Sequence record: ON529853.1
DNA: 64,000 nucleotides
Direction: 5' to 3' (one strand)
Of the stretch, positions 3,788-63,676 are shown in pieces (position 1 is the first letter of the stretch; each line of letters starts with the position of its first letter). Position numbers and translations under genes: made by a program. The notes under the pieces are model-generated. The model worked only from the letters and a program-made list of their open reading frames with translations. It was not told where the DNA came from and made no database searches.

Positions 3788-3983
3788 GGCGGCGCCTCCC
3801 CAGGCAATGAAAGAACAGTCCCACCACGACGGCGGTCAGACCCGCCGTCACCTGGGTCTCGATGGTCAGGGCGCGCGTTACGCCGAACAGCGGCAGCACG
3901 GCGTAGAGAGCCGCCACCCCTGAAACGGCCACGAAGAAGAGGGCAGCAGCGAGCGACAGCCCGGCAAAGACGCGATCGACCAT
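3780..3983 (-). CDS. small membrane protein
   Basis: MVDRVFAGLSLAAALFF..., two TM segments. Confidence 0.7.
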   Translation of the reverse strand: MVDRVFAGLSLAAALFFVAVSGVAALYAVLPLFGVTRALTIETQVTAGLTAVVVGLFFHCLGRRRHA

Positions 3984-4177
3984 CAGCGCTTGCCGAAGTC
4001 CACCGAGATGACGCGGCCGGAAACCCCCGTCACCTGAGGATGACGCTCGCGCGTCGCGGCCTTCTGGCGCGCCGCGATGGTTTCGTGGGCCTTGTCGATG
4101 GCGCGGGCGGCCTTGGACGCCGGGCGCAGCAGCGTCCCCAGGGTGTATTCCAGGTCGGGTTCGAAGGTGTTGCTCAT
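3983..4177 (-). CDS. hypothetical protein
   Basis: 64 aa, TGATG coupling. Confidence 0.65.
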   Translation of the reverse strand: MSNTFEPDLEYTLGTLLRPASKAARAIDKAHETIAARQKAATRERHPQVTGVSGRVISVDFGKR

Positions 4178-4863
4178 CAGTCCGCGCTCCTCGCCAGTGC
4201 AGCGGCCTCAGCCTCTGCGAATTCCGTTTCGTCGAACCGATCACGCAGATAGGTCCGCATTTCTTCACCGACCCGCGACAGGCGCACGCCCTCCGGGGTC
4301 ATCGGATCGGCGATCACGAGCCCCTTCATCTGGAGATACTTCAGCGTGCGGTCGTAACTCATCGCCGGGCGACTTGATTGCTCGATCGCCTTGGCAAGGC
4401 CGACCTCCGGCATCAAGCGGATGACCTGCCGGACCTCCAACCCGAGCATGACGGCGCGGCCGTACATCAGCGAATCTTCATCCCGGACGCGCGCGGCCTC
4501 GGCGACAGCGTCAGAGGCGCCGCGCATGTTCATTTCGGCCAGAGAGCGCAGCATGGTGCGAGCGAGGGTATTGGACTGTTCGGCGGCCTCGACCTGTTCG
4601 GGGAGAATCCGATACGCCGACCAGACTTCCATCCCGAAGTGGATGTAGTCGCGTCCGCTGTCCGGGTCGATCGTGCCGTCAGAGTTCAAGCCGGCCGACC
4701 CCTGGACGCGGAACCGCGCCGTCTGCATGAGCCCGCGCCACAGGCGCGCATCCTCCAACGCCTCCATGACCGTCTCCAGGGCGGCGTAGGGCACGTTCGC
4801 CATATTCTCGACGGCCGTGCGCAGTTCGGCTTCGGCGGCGTTCAGTTCAATGGTCTGGGTCAT
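4177..4863 (-). CDS. hypothetical protein, possible C-terminal winged helix
   Basis: GGAGGACCC RBS; first gene after promoter. Confidence 0.75.
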   Translation of the reverse strand: MTQTIELNAAEAELRTAVENMANVPYAALETVMEALEDARLWRGLMQTARFRVQGSAGLNSDGTIDPDSGRDYIHFGMEVWSAYRILPEQVEAAEQSNTLARTMLRSLAEMNMRGASDAVAEAARVRDEDSLMYGRAVMLGLEVRQVIRLMPEVGLAKAIEQSSRPAMSYDRTLKYLQMKGLVIADPMTPEGVRLSRVGEEMRTYLRDRFDETEFAEAEAAALARSAD

Positions 4864-17819: not shown

Positions 17820-17990
17820 CCGAGCGCGCCTCCAGGCGGACTCGCTGCGCGTGGACCTGGCGGAGGCTTCCCTGCCGCCGGGGGGGTTGGCGGGGCCTCG
17901 CGGCCGGAGCGTAATCGGGGGGCGTCATGCGCTCGCACAGGGAAGTGTCCTGCCAAGGACCCCAGGAACATGGCATAGGCGCGCGCAAAG
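17820..17990 (+). ncRNA. candidate structured RNA (multibranch)
   Basis: gcctcc/ggaggc stem; cttccctg/cagggaag closing three hairpins; no credible ORF. Confidence 0.4.
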
Positions 17991-18025
17991 GAAAAGCCCC
18001 GCCGGCGAACCGACGGGGCTTTTCC
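17990..18025 (-). terminator. intrinsic terminator (possibly bidirectional)
   Basis: Minus: ggaaaagccccgtcgg-ttcg-ccggcggggcttttcc then ttt. Confidence 0.85.
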
Positions 18026-18233
18026 ACAAGGCCTGACGACCTCGCTCGATTCCTCTTGGCCCGAAGGCTCATCCCGCTGACGCGTGGACCCCTTGCGGGG
18101 CGGGCGGACGCTATTGCCCCAAGGGGCTCAACCGATCTGTCGTCCAGAAACAGGGTGAGACCTCGGCGGCCGCACGAGGTCTCGGGCGTCCTCAAGCCGG
18201 ATTTCCGATCCTCGTACTGACCGGCTATTGAAC
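17990..18233 (-). ncRNA. candidate ~245-nt structured sRNA
   Basis: Bounded by near-consensus promoter and terminator; UUCG/GCAA tetraloops; 9-bp hairpin 18157-18183; no credible ORF. Confidence 0.6.
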
Positions 18234-58140: not shown

Positions 58141-58953
58141 TTATGCCTCTTGGAGAATGTCGGCCGCCTCCAGGCGGCCCTTGAGATAGGCGCGGGCCAC
58201 CACCTGGGAGCCGAACCCGATCGGATCGCCCAGCGGCATGTAGACGACCTCATCGTCGCCATCCCACTTGCCCCGGATCAGCCCGACGTCCGGGTCCACC
58301 AGACCGTCGGTGCGGAACAGGCGGTCGCCGTAGACCAGCCAGTTGCGCACGTAGGCGATCTTGTCGGGCGCATCGGCGCGGTAGCCGCCCCAGGCGACGT
58401 CGATGGTCTTGCAGCGGACCTCGCCGCGCGCCACCGTCTTGGACTTCTGCCGGCGGTTGTTTTTGGCCCGACGCCGCTCGTGGCGGTTGACGTCCCGCCC
58501 CGGACCCGCCGCCAGATCGCCCGGCGTCTTGTCGGACTTGAAGCGGTTACAGGGGCTGCACATGGTCTGATAGTTGAAGTCCGCGTCCGGCCCGCCTTTC
58601 GAGCGCGGCTGGATGTGGTCCTTGGTCAACATCACCAGCTTGCCGCCGGCGTCGAGCGCATAGAGGTTGAAATGCCACTTGTTGGTGGTCGCCTCCCACT
58701 GCCCGGTCGACTTGCGCAGCACCGCCGAACGCTCCTTGGCGAACCACATTCCGGTGATCCCGCAAGAGACGCAGACCGTGGACTTCTGGAAGAGGCGGTA
58801 ACGCGCCGACGTCATGTCGATCACGTCATCATCGAAGACGTGCGTATCCTTGTCCAGGTGCTGGAAGACTTCGTCGCAGGCATAGAAACCGCGCCGCTCG
58901 TAGCCTGGCACGAAGCCGTGCGACCGCACCCCTTTCGGCCCGTTGGTCGTCAC
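58141..58953 (-). CDS. HNH endonuclease
   Basis: CVSC...TKDHIQPRSKGG...NYQTMCSPCN. Confidence 0.85.
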   Translation of the reverse strand: MTTNGPKGVRSHGFVPGYERRGFYACDEVFQHLDKDTHVFDDDVIDMTSARYRLFQKSTVCVSCGITGMWFAKERSAVLRKSTGQWEATTNKWHFNLYALDAGGKLVMLTKDHIQPRSKGGPDADFNYQTMCSPCNRFKSDKTPGDLAAGPGRDVNRHERRRAKNNRRQKSKTVARGEVRCKTIDVAWGGYRADAPDKIAYVRNWLVYGDRLFRTDGLVDPDVGLIRGKWDGDDEVVYMPLGDPIGFGSQVVARAYLKGRLEAADILQEA

Positions 58954-59642: not shown

Positions 59643-59869
59643 CACGCACCTATCTTCCATACCCGGCGCGCCAGGACGGCGGCCGCAAACATGCCGACCA
59701 GGGTCAGCAGCGCCAGGGCGCCGCCCCGCACGGCGTGTTCCGCTTGACCCTCTCCGAAGCCGAAGAGGCGATTGATCCAATAGGCCGCCCCGCCCATCAT
59801 CACGAAGGTGACGTAGAGGGCGACGACCGTAGCCGCCAGCAGCCGCAGCGTTTTTAGTCCGGTGCTCAT
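59642..59869 (-). CDS. small membrane protein
   Basis: Two TM segments. Confidence 0.7.
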   Translation of the reverse strand: MSTGLKTLRLLAATVVALYVTFVMMGGAAYWINRLFGFGEGQAEHAVRGGALALLTLVGMFAAAVLARRVWKIGA

Positions 59870-60240
59870 GAGTGAATCTCGTCGCGCCCGTCCAGCGCGT
59901 CGTCGCGCTGACACAGGTCGACCAGTCGGTGGACCGAGATGTGGCGGTCGTAGATGGCGCAGCCGTCGAACTTGAACAGTTCAGAGGCCTCATGCATCAG
60001 GGCGCGCTGCACCGCCGCCCAGAGCGTCTGGACGATCTCGGTGTCGGTCATCCACTGCGACAGCTTCCACTTGCGGCCCTTCCATTCGATGGGCAGGCCG
60101 GTCTTGGTGTCGACGCCGTCAGGGCAGATGATCTGGCACCAGGGCTCGTCGATCGAGCCCGAGACCTTGAAGATGAAGCCCGGATAGCGGCATCGCGCCA
60201 CCACCGTCTCCAGTTCGGCGAGGGTCTTCGGCGACGACAT
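59866..60240 (-). CDS. conserved phage hypothetical protein
   Basis: GRKWKLSQWMTDTEIVQT...HEASELF. Confidence 0.8.
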   Translation of the reverse strand: MSSPKTLAELETVVARCRYPGFIFKVSGSIDEPWCQIICPDGVDTKTGLPIEWKGRKWKLSQWMTDTEIVQTLWAAVQRALMHEASELFKFDGCAIYDRHISVHRLVDLCQRDDALDGRDEIHS

Positions 60241-60773
60241 CAGGCGGGCGGCCTGGCTTTCGCCCGCGCTTCCAGCGCCGCCATGAAACGGCTGTTGTCG
60301 TAGTGGACCTGACCCGGCAGGGCGGCCTTCAGCGCCTTCACATCCTTGATGTGCCGGGTGAACATCGCCACAGGCGGCACTTCATCCGCCAGGGACTCGC
60401 CGGTGTAGTGGTACATCTCGGCCTCGATCACCAGGACGTCGCCCTCGAAGACCTTGACGCGCGGTCCCGTCAGTCCGGCCTTGTAGCCGTTGTGGGAATC
60501 CCAGGCCTGGCCCAGTTCGCCTTCGAAGCGGGGGTCCTTGAGGTCGACGCGCACGTCGATCGGCCAAGTCTCCTGACCCAGAACAAAGCCGTCGGCCTGG
60601 ACCTTATTGATCCAGTCCACAGCGAGCGAGGCGTGCTCATGGCGGAAGGCCTCCTGCGTGAAGGTCACGGCGCGCATCGTCGGAGGCGTGACAGCGGCCA
60701 AGGCGCCGGCGGGCAGCGCGCTGAGCGCCGCAGCGGCGCCGGCGGTTTTGAACAGGGTGCGGCGGTTCATCAA
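60240..60773 (-). CDS. putative Tat-exported protein
   Basis: MNRRTLFKTAGAAAALSALPAGALA twin-arginine signal. Confidence 0.75.
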   Translation of the reverse strand: MMNRRTLFKTAGAAAALSALPAGALAAVTPPTMRAVTFTQEAFRHEHASLAVDWINKVQADGFVLGQETWPIDVRVDLKDPRFEGELGQAWDSHNGYKAGLTGPRVKVFEGDVLVIEAEMYHYTGESLADEVPPVAMFTRHIKDVKALKAALPGQVHYDNSRFMAALEARAKARPPA

Positions 60774-60781
60774 GGACTCCT

Positions 60782-61030
60782 TCAGTCGAGAGGGATGCCG
60801 TGATAGGCGAGCCAGTCCTGGAGTTCGCCGAGCGAAGGGAAGTCATCGACCTCCAACTCGCCCGACGCGCCGGTCAGGGTGCAGCCCCAGTAGCCTTCAT
60901 CGTCATCCTGTTCGAGGAATTGCGCCGTCACATCGTCGTCTTCAGTCGCCTCGCCGAATCGCTCGAACCAGATCAGACCGAGGTCGTCGCCGGGTTGCAG
61001 GACGGGGGCGTTGAAGAAGTCCAGACGCAA
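60782..61030 (-). CDS. very acidic small protein
   Basis: GAGGA RBS + TTG; 21 D/E versus 2 R in 82 aa. Confidence 0.7.
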   Translation of the reverse strand: MRLDFFNAPVLQPGDDLGLIWFERFGEATEDDDVTAQFLEQDDDEGYWGCTLTGASGELEVDDFPSLGELQDWLAYHGIPLD

Positions 61031-61049
61031 GACGCATCCTCTGGGAAAA

Positions 61050-61340
61050 GTAAGGGTGGGAGCGAGGGCGGACGACGCATGAGCACAGGGCAAAAAGCAC
61101 AGGGCAAAAAGCATCCCAGCAAACGTGTCACAAACCCCGAGCAATAGAGCAGCGCCATTGTTTCAGGCGGCCCGAAGGCACGTTGTTTGATCGGGGCAGC
61201 ACGACACGATCCCATAAAGGGTGGTGCATCGTTGCATCATCAGCGCCCGAAGGCCCGACAACTGTTAAGGGCGCCGCCCGTATCCTCGCTCCCACCCCTC
61301 GGTTCAGGCGGCCCCGAAGGCCCGCCGTCCCCAAGCGGGT
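61050..61340 (-). ncRNA. candidate structured RNA with terminal closing stem
   Basis: 14-bp perfect IR 61054-61067/61284-61297 extended by G-U pairs; three cUUCGg hairpin repeats; 14-nt tandem repeat. Confidence 0.6.
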
Positions 61341-61344
61341 GAAA

Positions 61345-61941
61345 TCAGTTCAGCTTGAAGCGCTCGATCAGCGCCACCACGGACTCGGGGAGCGTGATGC
61401 GGTGACCGGTGTTCAGGCCGAGAAGGTCGTCGGTGATCTCGGTCTTTTCGCGCCGAATGTCGCGCAGGGCGTCTTCGATCCCTTCATAGGCCGACCGAGG
61501 GAGACGCACCGAAAACATGTCGGCGGCGGTGACGCGAACGCCGGCGGTCTTGGCGGCCTCGTGCTGCGCCAGCAGGGCGTCAAAGCGGCGCGGAGCCAGG
61601 GCGACGTCGTCGGTCGCCGTGGCGGCCGGCGCGTGGGCGAAGACCTGCGACAGCAGCTTCTCCCTGCGGTCCAGCAGCGCCTTGCGAGTCAAAACGTTGT
61701 TGATGTCCGTGGTGTGGAAGGCCTTGCCCATCAGGGCGCGGACGTCGTAGGCGGCTTCGGTCAGCGCCAGCGCGTCGTCCAGGGCCGCGCGCATCGCCTT
61801 GCTGGCGGCGTCGACCTTACCGACGAAGTCAGGGTCCGTATCGTAGATGGAGAACGCCACAGCGTGCTCGGTGGTCTGCTTCAGGGCTTCGTCTTGAAGC
61901 GATTTGGCGAGCGCGTTGGCTTTGCGCAGATTGACTTGCAT
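61345..61941 (-). CDS. helical/coiled-coil phage protein
   Basis: GGAGGACCCG RBS; MQVNLRKANALAKSL...; immediately upstream of the candidate RNA. Confidence 0.85.
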   Translation of the reverse strand: MQVNLRKANALAKSLQDEALKQTTEHAVAFSIYDTDPDFVGKVDAASKAMRAALDDALALTEAAYDVRALMGKAFHTTDINNVLTRKALLDRREKLLSQVFAHAPAATATDDVALAPRRFDALLAQHEAAKTAGVRVTAADMFSVRLPRSAYEGIEDALRDIRREKTEITDDLLGLNTGHRITLPESVVALIERFKLN

Positions 61942-61966
61942 CGGGTCCTCCGTAATTCGTTTGCCG

Positions 61967-61996
61967 TGTTTACTGGCACTTGGCGCCGTCTGTCAA
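61967..61996 (-). promoter_or_regulatory. sigma70-type promoter (variant)
   Basis: TTGACA-N17/18-(G)TAAACA. Confidence 0.6.
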
Positions 61997-62003
61997 CTCT
62001 TAA

Positions 62004-62339
62004 TCACATCGGCTTCAACTTGATCGCCAGCGGCACGCCGTTGATGTTGAATTTGACGACGTCGACGCGCCCCGCACGCACCAGCTTCTGGATCGTCGCC
62101 GCCGAGAAGCTTTTTTCCTTGAAGGCGCCGTCGGCGTCTAGGGGCTGCCCCATCACGTTGTAGAGGCCGAGGCTGTCGCGTTCCATGGAGCGGGAATCGT
62201 GGACCGCCATCATGAGTAGGGCGATTTCGGCGGCGGGGGCCACAGAGCCCTTACGCAGGCCGCCCAGGTAGCGGACGACCCGTTCCCGCTGCTGCGCCTG
62301 CATCTGCTGTCGAAAGGCGATCTGGGACGCCGTGGGCAT
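62004..62339 (-). CDS. hypothetical protein
   Basis: MPTASQIAF..., TGATG coupling. Confidence 0.7.
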   Translation of the reverse strand: MPTASQIAFRQQMQAQQRERVVRYLGGLRKGSVAPAAEIALLMMAVHDSRSMERDSLGLYNVMGQPLDADGAFKEKSFSAATIQKLVRAGRVDVVKFNINGVPLAIKLKPM

Positions 62340-62596
62340 CAGACCCCGCCCTTCATCGCGGCGACATCCAGCACGATCAGGACGCCGGTGTGAACCCGCA
62401 GGCGATCGGAGTTGATGCCGGAGAGGAAGACGGGGGCCTCGTCGGTGCCGGGGCGGATGACACAGTAAGGCTGCTGCCTCAAGCGCGTGGCGTCGGAGGC
62501 GTGCTCGACGATGGTCCAGGCGACCGCTTCGGCGTCCCCGGCGTCGTGACCCAAGCGCGTCAGCCAGCGGGCGCAGTGGGCGTGGAATTGGCGCAT
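62339..62596 (-). CDS. hypothetical protein
   Basis: 85 aa. Confidence 0.7.
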   Translation of the reverse strand: MRQFHAHCARWLTRLGHDAGDAEAVAWTIVEHASDATRLRQQPYCVIRPGTDEAPVFLSGINSDRLRVHTGVLIVLDVAAMKGGV

Positions 62597-62904
62597 CAGC
62601 GGTTTGCTCCCAAAAGCCAGAGCGCCAGCGACGCCATATCGTCATCGTCGGGGATCGAGACCACCCCGGCGGCGAGGTCGGGGCGATAGGTCATGCTGTT
62701 GATCTGCGGATCGACCAGGCCGGCGAGGGTCCAGGCGAACGGAATCCAGGCGTCGCCCGCCGCCGACTTGAAGGCCATGCGATGCTCAACGCCGGCATTG
62801 ACGGTCTTGATCAGGTCCTTACCGTGGACGACATGGCGTCCTTCGCTCAACGGGTGTTTCAGGATGAAGCGCTCCACTTCCTGGAGCAGCATCGGGTCAG
62901 CCAC
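62596..62904 (-). CDS. hypothetical protein
   Basis: GGAG RBS + GTG. Confidence 0.7.
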   Translation of the reverse strand: MADPMLLQEVERFILKHPLSEGRHVVHGKDLIKTVNAGVEHRMAFKSAAGDAWIPFAWTLAGLVDPQINSMTYRPDLAAGVVSIPDDDDMASLALWLLGANR

Positions 62905-62914
62905 GTAAGGTCTC

Positions 62915-63676
62915 CTAGCCGCCGGCAGTCTTGATCGCTTCAGCGAGGGCGGCGGCCTCGAAGTTCGATAGGTCCGGGCCGAGGCGGTCCTGAATGGAGC
63001 GGAGTCCCTCCAGTGTGTCGGCTTGAAGTTGTTTACGGGCGGCGACTTCAAGAGCGTGGATGCGATCGCGCTCTTCGCGGTCCGTCTTGTCCTGGAGCGC
63101 CTTGGCGCGCGCCCGCTCGGCGCTGTCGATCCGCGCCTGTTTCGCCTCGGCGATGATCTGCACCACCGCTGCGGCGTTCGGCAGGCGCCCGGCCTTCAGG
63201 AATCGGGGGACGAAAGACGCGATCTGCTCGCGGCTTTTCCACCCCGGCCAGCCGCTGTCCTCGCTGTCGGCCCATTGACCGTGATCCTGGTCGGGCGCGA
63301 CGTCCCGGCGCCAGGGCGTCAAGGGCGTCAACTTGCCCATGAGGCCGCCGTAGCGTCCCCAGACCGGGAGGTTGTCGCAGTCGGGGTTCGGCGGCGGCGG
63401 CTCCCAGGCGTGGATGAAGCTGTCGCTGTAGGTGTGCGTGCAGCCGTTCGGCACCAGGGCGGTGAAGACCCAGGGCTTGCCGACGCCGATCGGGTAGAAG
63501 GCGAACCCCACCAGATCGTCGCCGACCGTGATCTCCCACTTGGAGCGCTGCTGCGGCGTCAGTTCCGTCCTAAAGCTGACCCCCAGGTCGGGATCGACCT
63601 GGGTGAACACGACCTCAAGGCCGTCGACCGAATAGGTCTCGACCTTGCGCCGGCGCGGCTTGGCGTCGGCGGTCAA
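62915..63676 (-). CDS. hypothetical protein
   Basis: 253 aa. Confidence 0.8.
   Translation of the reverse strand: MTADAKPRRRKVETYSVDGLEVVFTQVDPDLGVSFRTELTPQQRSKWEITVGDDLVGFAFYPIGVGKPWVFTALVPNGCTHTYSDSFIHAWEPPPPNPDCDNLPVWGRYGGLMGKLTPLTPWRRDVAPDQDHGQWADSEDSGWPGWKSREQIASFVPRFLKAGRLPNAAAVVQIIAEAKQARIDSAERARAKALQDKTDREERDRIHALEVAARKQLQADTLEGLRSIQDRLGPDLSNFEAAALAEAIKTAGG

Follow-up and report, generated by a model that had tools for sequence, protein, structure and literature searches.

We examined a 64,000-nucleotide (nt) stretch of sequence record ON529853.1, hereafter the window, which belongs to the 348-kb genome of the Brevundimonas jumbo phage vB_BpoS-Marchewka/Bambus (Dolichocephalovirinae, from sewage). 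The subject of this analysis is a structured RNA element on the minus strand at 61046-61334, together with the gene immediately upstream of it, whose product we call protein X. The minus strand carries the local genes, all of which are labeled as hypothetical proteins in GenBank. The open reading frame (ORF) of X (61345-61941, minus strand) encodes 198 amino acids, begins with an ATG at 61941 and is preceded by a ribosome-binding site (RBS), GGAGGA, at 61951-61946. A gap of 314 nt separates its stop codon from the TTG start of the next annotated gene at 61030, and the RNA, which is co-directional with X and starts at the X stop codon, occupies this gap. Its extent is that of the match to covariance model (CM) R1, at 254 bits; we refer to the window RNA and its close relatives as the W family. 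The region 60700-62100 is identical in vB_BpoS-Marchewka and vB_BpoS-Bambus and shows ~90% identity in the phages Kabachok, Domovoi, and Papperlapapp.

The X unit has a promoter-like site at 61970-61996 (minus strand), composed of TTGACA at 61996-61991, a spacer of 13 nt (12 after TTGACAG) and GCCAGTAA at 61977-61970. This arrangement is kept as GAGTTGACAG-N12-GCCA(G/C)TAAA in Marchewka, Kabachok, Domovoi, CcrPW, and CcrColossus, with the remainder of the spacer having diverged, and it presumably resembles the Caulobacter sigma-73 consensus. A scan for E. coli-type promoters made no call at this site, nor at the RNA element. The promoter that a sequence-only reading of this DNA had assigned to X was not called as an E. 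coli-type site, but the TTGACA site is conserved as far as the Caulobacter phages, and we regard 61970-61996 as the putative promoter of the unit.

On the minus strand, the element folds with a predicted energy of -142.6 kcal/mol (z = -3.0 relative to shuffles). At its 5′ end is a hairpin, H0 (61298-61335), in which CUUGG (61335-61331) pairs with CCGAG (61302-61298) and encloses an inner helix with its loop, GGCGGGCC-UUCG-GGGCCGCC. Between the outer and inner helices lies a 4x4 internal loop, GGAC/UGAA, in which tandem sheared G-A pairs, a motif that commonly binds protein, could form. The five Brevundimonas phages all keep this loop unchanged, and the Caulobacter phages have Watson-Crick pairs in its place. 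The outer helix does not vary among 7/7 phages, and the inner helix retains its pairing through two-sided changes at five of its six pairs. Next, the 5′ arm of the closing stem P1, GGGUGGGAGCGAGG (61284-61297), pairs over 14 bp with its 3′ arm, CCUCGCUCCCACCC (61054-61067), and past a bulge (AUA) the closing stem extends by 10 bp with two G-U pairs, CGGGCGGCGC (61280-61271) with GCGUCGUCCG (61078-61069). The G-U pairs of P1 (53:306 and 55:304 in alignment A4) are possible only on the minus strand. On the plus strand, the invariant G-U pairs would become A-C mismatches, so the strand that folds is the one that is sense for the genes. Within the closing stem are a variable hairpin (GGGCC-UUCG-GGCGC, 61241-61256) and a core domain (61124-61208). 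The core consists of P3 (CGUGUC, 61208-61203, with GACACG, 61129-61124), an internal loop (GUGCUG/UUUGU), P4 (CCCCGA, 61196-61191, with UCGGGG, 61140-61135), and the apical hairpins GCC-UUCG-GGC (61179-61170) and CGCC...GGCG (61169-61153). The core is followed by a tract at 61076-61123 that reads UUUGCUG GGAUGCU UUUUGCC CUGUGCU UUUUGCC CUGUGCU CAUGC, which we call the UG heptad tract.

The 5′/3′ end-pairing and the non-coding nature of the stretch after X, both proposed earlier, were borne out, as were the RBS and the helical character of X described below. Close relatives differ in the gap by insertions or deletions (indels) of 1, 2, and 3 nt, indicating that the element is non-coding, and ORFs of 68 and 80 amino acids inside the gap were rejected as genes because indels break them in relatives. 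An intrinsic terminator or simple 3′ untranslated region (UTR), which would show a GC-rich hairpin and a U run at the gene end, was likewise not supported: the hairpin after the X stop codon is followed by CUGAACC rather than a U run, and a terminator scan of 60000-63000 made no call at the element. The sequence-only reading had also drawn attention to repeats. Three GCC-UUCG-GGC units do occur, near 61322-61303, 61254-61238, and 61179-61162, and GCCTTCGGGSC is found four times in the window vs. 0.28 expected, with two of the four inside the element. In relatives, however, the UUCG loops are replaced by UACG, UUAG, GAAA, and GUAA. Since loops, stems, and number all change between relatives, the UUCG hairpins, as judged from these comparisons, behave as ordinary stable tetraloop caps. 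The tandem duplication of TTTTTGCCCTGTGC (61083-61110) is also present, but it corresponds to two heptad pairs and is only part of the longer UG array.

Conservation of the structure was assessed in seven cultured phages from three clades, aligned over 57 consensus pairs, with partners slid by 1-3 columns and 500 shuffles as controls. A gap of similar size follows X in 7/7 cultured relatives, measuring 284-292 nt (~285) in Gurke, Kikimora, CcrPW, and CcrColossus. Standard pairs filled 91.5% of cells, vs. 38-50% with slid partners, and 25 of the 57 pairs had changed on both sides with pairing kept, vs. 2-8 when slid; none of the 500 shuffles equaled the observed values. In P1, 95.5% of cells were paired and 8 of 16 pairs showed two-sided changes, with the arms changing together by clade (GGGAGCGAGG/CCUCGCUCCC, GGGGACGGAAG/CUUCCGUCCCC, and GGAAGCGG/CCGCUUCC). 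P3 and P4 are documented by direct reading and single-sequence folds, since MAFFT leaves their 5′ arms out of register. In the Marchewka group, Gurke/Kikimora, and CcrPW/CcrColossus, respectively, P3 reads CGUGUC/GACACG, GACAUC/GAUGUC, and AUCUCU/AGAGAU, and P4 reads CCCCGA/UCGGGG, GCCGAG/CUCGGC, and CCGGAA/UUCCGG. Among the Marchewka-type phages, the 3′ two-thirds of the element (61054-61215) is 98.8-99.4% identical, vs. 87-93% for the flanking genes. Sequence change is concentrated in one variable hairpin, that at 61241-61256 being the least conserved part of the RNA; its stem reads AGGCC/GGCCU in Kabachok and Domovoi, where it is flanked by indels on both sides. Judging from these alignments, the element is under purifying selection.

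Relatives of the X-RNA pair were found far beyond the cultured phages. Scans with an X alignment recovered 107 relatives in IMG/VR and 40 in JGI metagenomes, nearly all of the distant ones on low-GC (35-45%) phage contigs, several of which are 160-360 kb long. There, the X genes sit within dense arrays of tRNA genes, some of which also hold GOLLD. In one class of loci, class A (e.g., L011, L043, and L054), a gap of ~270 nt lies directly 3′ of X and ends at a tRNA gene, and its alignment shows compensatory changes at 23 of 37 pairs. In class A', an element of ~250 nt lies upstream of X, either directly or with an ORF of ~75 amino acids between them. The class A' nhmmer profile matches 97 loci, and an alignment of 35 diverse members has 97.3% of cells paired and compensatory changes at 26 of 35 pairs. 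Classes A and A' are linked by matches of CM R2 (class A) to A' at E of about 1e-3 and by profile cross-matches. To determine position relative to X, nhmmer matches were counted in the flanks of 89 distinct distant X genes after removal of duplicates. The RNA was upstream only in 63, downstream only in 19, and on both sides in none; thus it adjoins X in 82 of the 89, or 82 of the 86 with complete flanks. Four genes with full flanks had no match, one of them being that of CcrPW, which has the W form, and three had flanks that were too short. In the cultured relatives, the RNA adjoins X in 7/7. The earlier expectation of a covarying RNA always downstream of X homologs therefore held for adjacency but not for orientation, since the RNA is upstream in most distant phages. 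Of the proteins encoded in the window's 12-kb neighborhood, none but X itself and a generic HNH domain recurs near distant X genes.

Is the window RNA homologous to these low-GC classes? The class A nhmmer profile matched the CcrPW element at E = 0.0035 and that of CcrColossus at E = 0.028, and a joint A and A' profile did so at E = 8e-4 and 5e-4, respectively. Elements of the Marchewka type scored E = 0.5-1.5 against the low-GC profiles, yet these were the top matches and were collinear. In particular, the five best matches of the class A profile all fell within the element, on the right strand and in collinear order, and the best match in the 128 kb of the two window strands was 61162-61090 (minus). 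Conversely, the best foreign match of CM R1, the model of the window family, was to the heptad tract of L011 (E = 0.03). A blastn search with the CcrPW and L011 elements against cultured phages returned only self and CcrColossus, or nothing, and a scan of the collection for CTTGG-N20-50-CCGAGGGGYGG gave 120 chance matches, none confirmed by CM R1. The W family differs from the low-GC classes in its added H0, which they do not have, and a second apical hairpin, and it is without the conserved P1-P2 internal loop seen in those classes. Nevertheless, an order of parts is common to all three: P1, P2, one or two variable hairpins, P3, an internal loop beginning with GUG, P4, an apical part with UG(Y)...UUGCU on its 3′ side, P4', P3', the UG heptad tract, P2', and P1'. 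The isolated core domains of W, A, and A' each fold to P3-loop-P4. Based on profile E-values and the shared position, size, helix order, and tract, homology of the W RNA to A and A' is probable, though not proven.

Across the families, the heptad tract is the segment matched by the profile searches. In the window, it has five UG dinucleotides at a strict 7-nt period (61084-61113), a regularity matched by 3 of 1000 shuffles, and it is the sole run of at least five UG heptads on either strand of the 64 kb. Six consecutive UG heptads are present in Gurke, CcrPW, CcrColossus, and class A (0 of 1000 shuffles). In the 35 class A' sequences (alignment A7), UG is invariant at 186/187, 193/194, 200/201, and 207/208, and two further UGs at 238/239 and 245/246 follow past a variable hairpin, in a 4+2 arrangement. 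By these alignments, no unpaired feature is more conserved than the tract in any of the classes.

Evidence that the RNA is made comes from run X1, an RNA-seq complementary DNA (cDNA) viral metagenome of ~1 million letters. It holds a single contig of 255 nt that covers 61073-61327 (strandless) at a depth of 59.6 with no mismatch to the window. Depth is zero over the coding flanks at 60700-61028 and 61358-62100. A second library from the same study also holds part of this stretch, and X1 is not listed among those that hold a different 10 kb of this phage. Carry-over of DNA would not produce an isolated 255-nt peak, 60-fold deep and with nothing on either side, which argues for a discrete, abundant RNA. 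The run identifiers are coded, and the libraries may come from a Brevundimonas virome study in which suspensions were nuclease-treated, RNA fractions were then treated with RNase III or S1, and host rRNA was found in the RNA preparations.

The AlphaFold2 model of X is all-helical, with a mean confidence score (pLDDT) of 88.7 and helices at residues 5-21, 39-78, 80-101, 113-133, and 153-179. X falls in phrog_25230 (E = 1.4e-5), a PHROG family annotated without function. Sequence-profile and fold searches identified no Pfam, PADLOC, or PDB relative, and BFVD, AFDB clusters, and the ESM Atlas provided no function. Its fold neighbors in BFVD and AFDB are uncharacterized phage or giant-virus proteins only, including proteins of CcrColossus and of uncultured phages. 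A Foldseek search of BFVD found the fold in Erwinia phage pEa_SNUABM_47, Vibrio phage Vp_R1, Catovirus, and Yasminevirus (E 5e-7 to 6e-4), each a large virus for which many tRNA genes have been reported, and the ESM Atlas suggests a distant tie to DUF6847. By tblastn, homologs with 30-35% identity occur in Gurke and Kikimora (Brevundimonas) and in CcrPW and CcrColossus (Caulobacter). Searches of cultured phages with the low-GC X proteins returned Brevundimonas and Caulobacter jumbo phages only. About a dozen Lys/Arg positions of X are conserved (R6, K7, K/R56-57, R68, K/R119, K122, K/R124, K/R156, and K163-166).

Other features accompany X and the RNA in the distant loci. In about a third of loci, a phage rpoZ-like gene lies between the class A' RNA and X. 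This ORF of 70-95 amino acids encodes a homolog of the RNA polymerase omega subunit (RpoZ/Rpb6; PF01192, E = 1.9e-12; MARITSQKAA...RFDLVLVASQRARE) and was found at L012 (2742-3026), L027 (2789-3001), and L079 (2774-3001), and in L022, L053, L066, L067, L034, L031, and others. That a phage omega shares an operon with the RNA and X may give a hint of function. Class B, a second conserved element of ~210 nt that is likewise non-coding, starts at the X stop codon with CAGACCCCGG and contains GGACAGGGUAAC...GUCUAGGGC...GCUAGACAC, with nhmmer E-values down to 1e-53. It is present at L053 (3576-3784), L078 (1153-1359), L066 (3575-3787), and 28 further distinct loci, where the class A' RNA lies upstream, and class B examples had no Rfam match even at E<=10.

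From these results, it is highly probable that the element encodes a structured RNA, conserved and expressed, with genetic coupling to X. We assign a probability of about one half to the fuller reading, namely that 61046-61334 (minus) specifies a stable non-coding RNA of ~260-290 nt, belonging to a large family coupled to X, and that it works through an RNA-protein mechanism of the following kind. X and the RNA lie co-directional behind the conserved promoter-like site, and the RNA accumulates while the X coding sequence was not recovered from the same library; the RNA may be cut out of the X transcript or may outlive it. The closing stem P1(-P2) would hold the 5′ and 3′ ends together and present the P3-loop-P4 core and the UG heptad tract. 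With a UG every 7 nt, five to six times, the mostly single-stranded tract could act as a periodic platform for several protein copies or for a cyclic or filamentous oligomer, in analogy with the periodic targets of TRAP and HutP. X would be the prime candidate for its binder, and the resulting nuclease-resistant ribonucleoprotein (RNP) might act in trans during infection. The context of tRNA arrays, a phage rpoZ-like gene, and a second RNA after X points to RNA metabolism, translation, or a take-over of transcription. A more specific proposal is that an X oligomer, laid along or wrapped by the six 7-nt repeats, forms a nuclease-resistant phage RNP, so abundant that it dominates a virome RNA library, with which many jumbo phages re-program host RNA polymerase, tRNA processing, or translation; this we put forward tentatively, as one possible outcome. 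The sequence-only reading had likewise envisaged an RNP module, with the UUCG units as repeated binding sites. The RNA and the X gene do form a conserved pair, but UUCG units that vary in loop, stem, and number do not fit the role of conserved binding sites.

Several observations weigh against this RNP reading. With filters off, neither CM R2 (class A) nor CM R3 (class A') matched the window element, and because the low-GC models miss it, the homology of W to A and A' rests on modest nhmmer E-values and on architecture. In the W family, helices 5 and 6 offer the first heptads an alternative pairing with a segment 3′ of the P1 5′ arm, and the tract may therefore not be unpaired in these phages. 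The X1 evidence is a Logan contig without strand, whose ends are not RNA ends and which stops 6 bases short of the P1 3′ arm. Furthermore, RNA libraries can contain DNA, and it is the zero-depth flanks and the missing other 10 kb alone that speak against carry-over. As to the protein, with a median pI of 6.4 and a net charge of about 0, X is not basic overall, and searches of PDB, BFVD, and AFDB found no recognizable RNA-binding fold in it. Lastly, 15-25 nt lie between the end of the class A' RNA and the RBS that follows it (that of X or of the rpoZ-like gene), as would be the case for an autoregulatory leader.

This last observation leads to the alternative that the element acts in cis within the X mRNA, serving as a protective 3′ UTR in the W family and class A or as an autorepressing 5′ leader in class A' (controlled by X or the omega-like protein), with the sequenced fragment being a decay product. 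Such a view is in keeping with the start of the element at the X stop codon within the same transcription unit, with the 15-25 nt that separate the class A' element from the next gene's RBS, and with the structured ends typical of decay-resistant fragments. However, the element occurs on either side of X with the same architecture, which a 5′ leader and a 3′ UTR rarely share, and this flip in position speaks against a role in cis alone. In most class A loci, a tRNA gene rather than a protein gene follows the element, and some 270 nt with an invariant periodic tract go far beyond the needs of protection. The element is, moreover, very abundant in a cDNA library without the X coding sequence, and an autoregulatory leader would still imply binding by X. 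We therefore consider a cis-acting element unlikely. A further possibility is that the RNA acts independently of X as a decoy or sponge, whose UG heptads titrate a host single-stranded-RNA-binding factor or ring regulator or divert a host RNA-directed defense, with linkage to X reflecting mere co-expression. Cold-shock and S1-type OB (oligonucleotide/oligosaccharide-binding) folds cover about 6-7 nt per domain, and periodic repeats are, by established knowledge, typical of RNAs bound by multimeric proteins (TRAP, HutP, and CsrB-type). The location in tRNA arrays, which the literature interprets as countering host tRNA-directed defenses, and the fact that X has no known RNA-binding fold would also suit a sponge. 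Nonetheless, exactly one copy lies beside X in 82 of the 89 distinct genes, among phages that share nothing else locally, and this one-to-one linkage argues against a sponge unrelated to X. Hosts also span 35-66% GC, so a common target would need to be universal. On balance, a sponge of this sort seems rather doubtful.

It is also conceivable, but improbable, that the RNA is associated with the virion or its assembly together with X, in a role like that of phi29 packaging RNA (pRNA) or as a scaffold or ruler for very long heads. The cultured carriers indeed have heads of 267-381 nm, and the RNA was recovered from libraries labeled as viral metagenomes; if these are from the Brevundimonas virome study, nuclease treatment before extraction implies protection. 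On the other hand, the connection of X1 to that study is only presumed, because the run identifiers are coded, and the host rRNA contamination reported in those preparations means that protection is not shown. The locus, too, lies among nucleotide-metabolism and tRNA-type genes rather than structural genes. The least probable explanation, to which we give very little credence, is a DNA-level element (an iteron origin, packaging site, or recombination site) or a mere cluster of terminator hairpins. Direct and inverted repeats are typical of origins as well, and the first hairpin after the X stop codon could terminate transcription. Yet the conserved G-U pairs would be A-C on the other strand, compensatory changes preserve pairing rather than sequence, the cDNA contig is limited to the element, no terminator was called, and a 7-nt period is unlike the DNA helical repeat.

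Comparisons with known RNAs set the window RNA apart from each class considered. Rfam 15 gave no match for the whole window at gathering score, and at E<=10 the element yielded only a chance ASdes match on the opposite strand (E = 4.8). On ten related loci, Rfam found tRNAs and two GOLLDs only, and nothing for class A examples. ARAGORN identified no tRNA or transfer-messenger RNA (tmRNA) at the element, in the window, or in L001, L002, L005, L007, and L008. With no covariance-model match, 6S, tmRNA, RNase P, signal recognition particle RNA, GOLLD, ROOL, riboswitches, and group I/II introns were rejected. In the literature searched, we found neither this RNA nor X described; a viral catalog of 10,006 motifs of 29-151 nt (PMC10690425) may hold fragments. 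Apparently, then, the RNA family is large and undescribed.

A Y-RNA-like, stem-closed RNA had been suggested for this locus. Y RNA/YrlA with Ro60 (Rsr) is reported in phages, including CcrColossus (PMC12135203, citing earlier work), and the window RNA resembles it in having a closing stem formed by the RNA ends, a gene beside that of a protein partner, and a presence in phages. Such a stem (here P1, 14-16 bp with covariation) is common to many RNA classes and is not diagnostic. The window RNA is about twice the size of Y RNA/YrlA, and its candidate partner is small and helical rather than a HEAT-repeat ring. Pfam found no TROVE domain in the seven neighboring proteins, none is annotated in L001-L008, and there is neither a tRNA-like module nor an Rfam Y_RNA or YrlA match; the suggestion was accordingly abandoned. 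GOLLD and ROOL are likewise structured non-coding RNAs of phages, typically in tRNA arrays, that were found by comparative genomics before their function. They assemble into RNA-only multimeric cages (PMC12286853). However, they measure ~600-800 nt vs. ~270 nt here and have no dedicated protein partner, whereas the window RNA is tied to the X gene; the periodic UG tract belongs to the latter RNA.

The targets of TRAP and HutP are similar to the tract in that single-stranded RNA presents a short motif at short, fixed intervals. HutP sites consist of NAG-N4 with a 7-nt period in two blocks split by a spacer, reminiscent of the class A' arrangement of 4+2 heptads with a hairpin between them. Unlike the closed, multi-helix RNA of 270 nt described here, they are short attenuator segments in bacterial mRNA leaders. 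In addition, the motif is UG(Y) here vs. (G/U)AG, and X is all-helical and unrelated to TRAP or HutP. CsrB/RsmZ sponges also carry many copies of a short protein-titrating motif, but theirs is GGA in hairpin loops at irregular spacing, without a closing stem; they are bacterial and had no Rfam match here. The pRNA of phi29 is a structured phage RNA with 5′/3′ helix closure that works in a protein complex. Unlike the window RNA, it is ~174 nt long, limited to phi29-like phages, multimerizes by loop-loop contacts, and has no heptad tract, and no sequence or model match to it was obtained. The species 1 and species 2 RNAs of the T4 tRNA gene cluster are stable small RNAs co-transcribed with phage tRNA genes. 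At ~140 nt they differ in size from the window RNA, and they are not known to have a linked protein. OLE with OAP provides another example of an RNA with a dedicated protein gene, although the window RNA is not a member of that class.

Large structured RNAs of unassigned job are rare, and each one solved has revealed new biochemistry, as with riboswitches, OLE, and the GOLLD/ROOL cages. In all probability, the new RNA class is real and well supported, its protein partner probable, and its mechanism hypothetical. With strong covariation, an accumulating RNA, a candidate protein partner, a periodic motif, and cultured phage-host pairs, the question of function is directly testable. Workable pairs include Brevundimonas pondensis with its phages and Caulobacter crescentus with CcrColossus or CcrPW. 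The family gives an annotation to a previously blank region of at least seven deposited jumbo-phage genomes and of about a hundred metagenomic phage contigs, and phrog_25230 becomes one of the few phage protein families for which an RNA partner is probable. Besides GOLLD, phage tRNA arrays thus hold at least two more unrecognized RNA classes, the UG-heptad RNA and class B.

Some further features of the window and related loci deserve mention. Downstream of the element, the 83-amino-acid ORF at 60782-61030 (minus; TTG start, RBS AGAGGA at 61041-61036) is annotated as coding sequence MARCHEWKA_03620. It is conserved within the W family only, has no Pfam match and no homolog near X in the distant loci, and probably is a neighbor that does not belong to the module. 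At 58141-58953 (minus), 2 kb downstream, is a gene for an HNH endonuclease (PF01844/PF14279), and class A loci also have HNH genes ~1-2 kb from X, the match spanning 35 residues only. In Kabachok (L002, 1145-2155) and Papperlapapp (L004, 1143-2153), an extra ORF of 1011 bp, annotated as "major capsid protein," separates two genes that are adjacent in Marchewka and Domovoi, the equivalent point in the window being near 59866. The difference could have arisen by insertion or deletion, or the ORF may be a moron or satellite-like gene. A second hairpin-rich, apparently non-coding stretch is present in the window at 17900-18200 (minus). It has no Rfam match, contains a GCC-UUCG-GGC hairpin at 18058-18068, and terminates in a strong terminator-like hairpin, AAAAGCCCCGUCGGUUCGCCGGCGGGGCUUUUCC.

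In the tRNA arrays of the distant loci, GOLLD (Rfam RF02032, 204-214 bits) occurs at L033 (5199-5665) and L077 (1496-1961), in the same arrays as X and the RNA. ARAGORN also called a tRNA with a CUA anticodon, labeled tRNA-Pyl (amber suppressor type), at L054 (4588-4662) and a tRNA with a 4-base anticodon (tgcg) at L040 (5009-5080). Both could point to the suppression of stop codons or of frameshifts. A permuted, two-piece tmRNA gene with the tag ANDELFALAA is located ~1 kb downstream of X at L026 (4585-4952), and at L011 the RNA and a tRNA-Trp gene are followed by the gene of an RNase H-like protein (3948-4418; PF04308, E = 1.6e-17).

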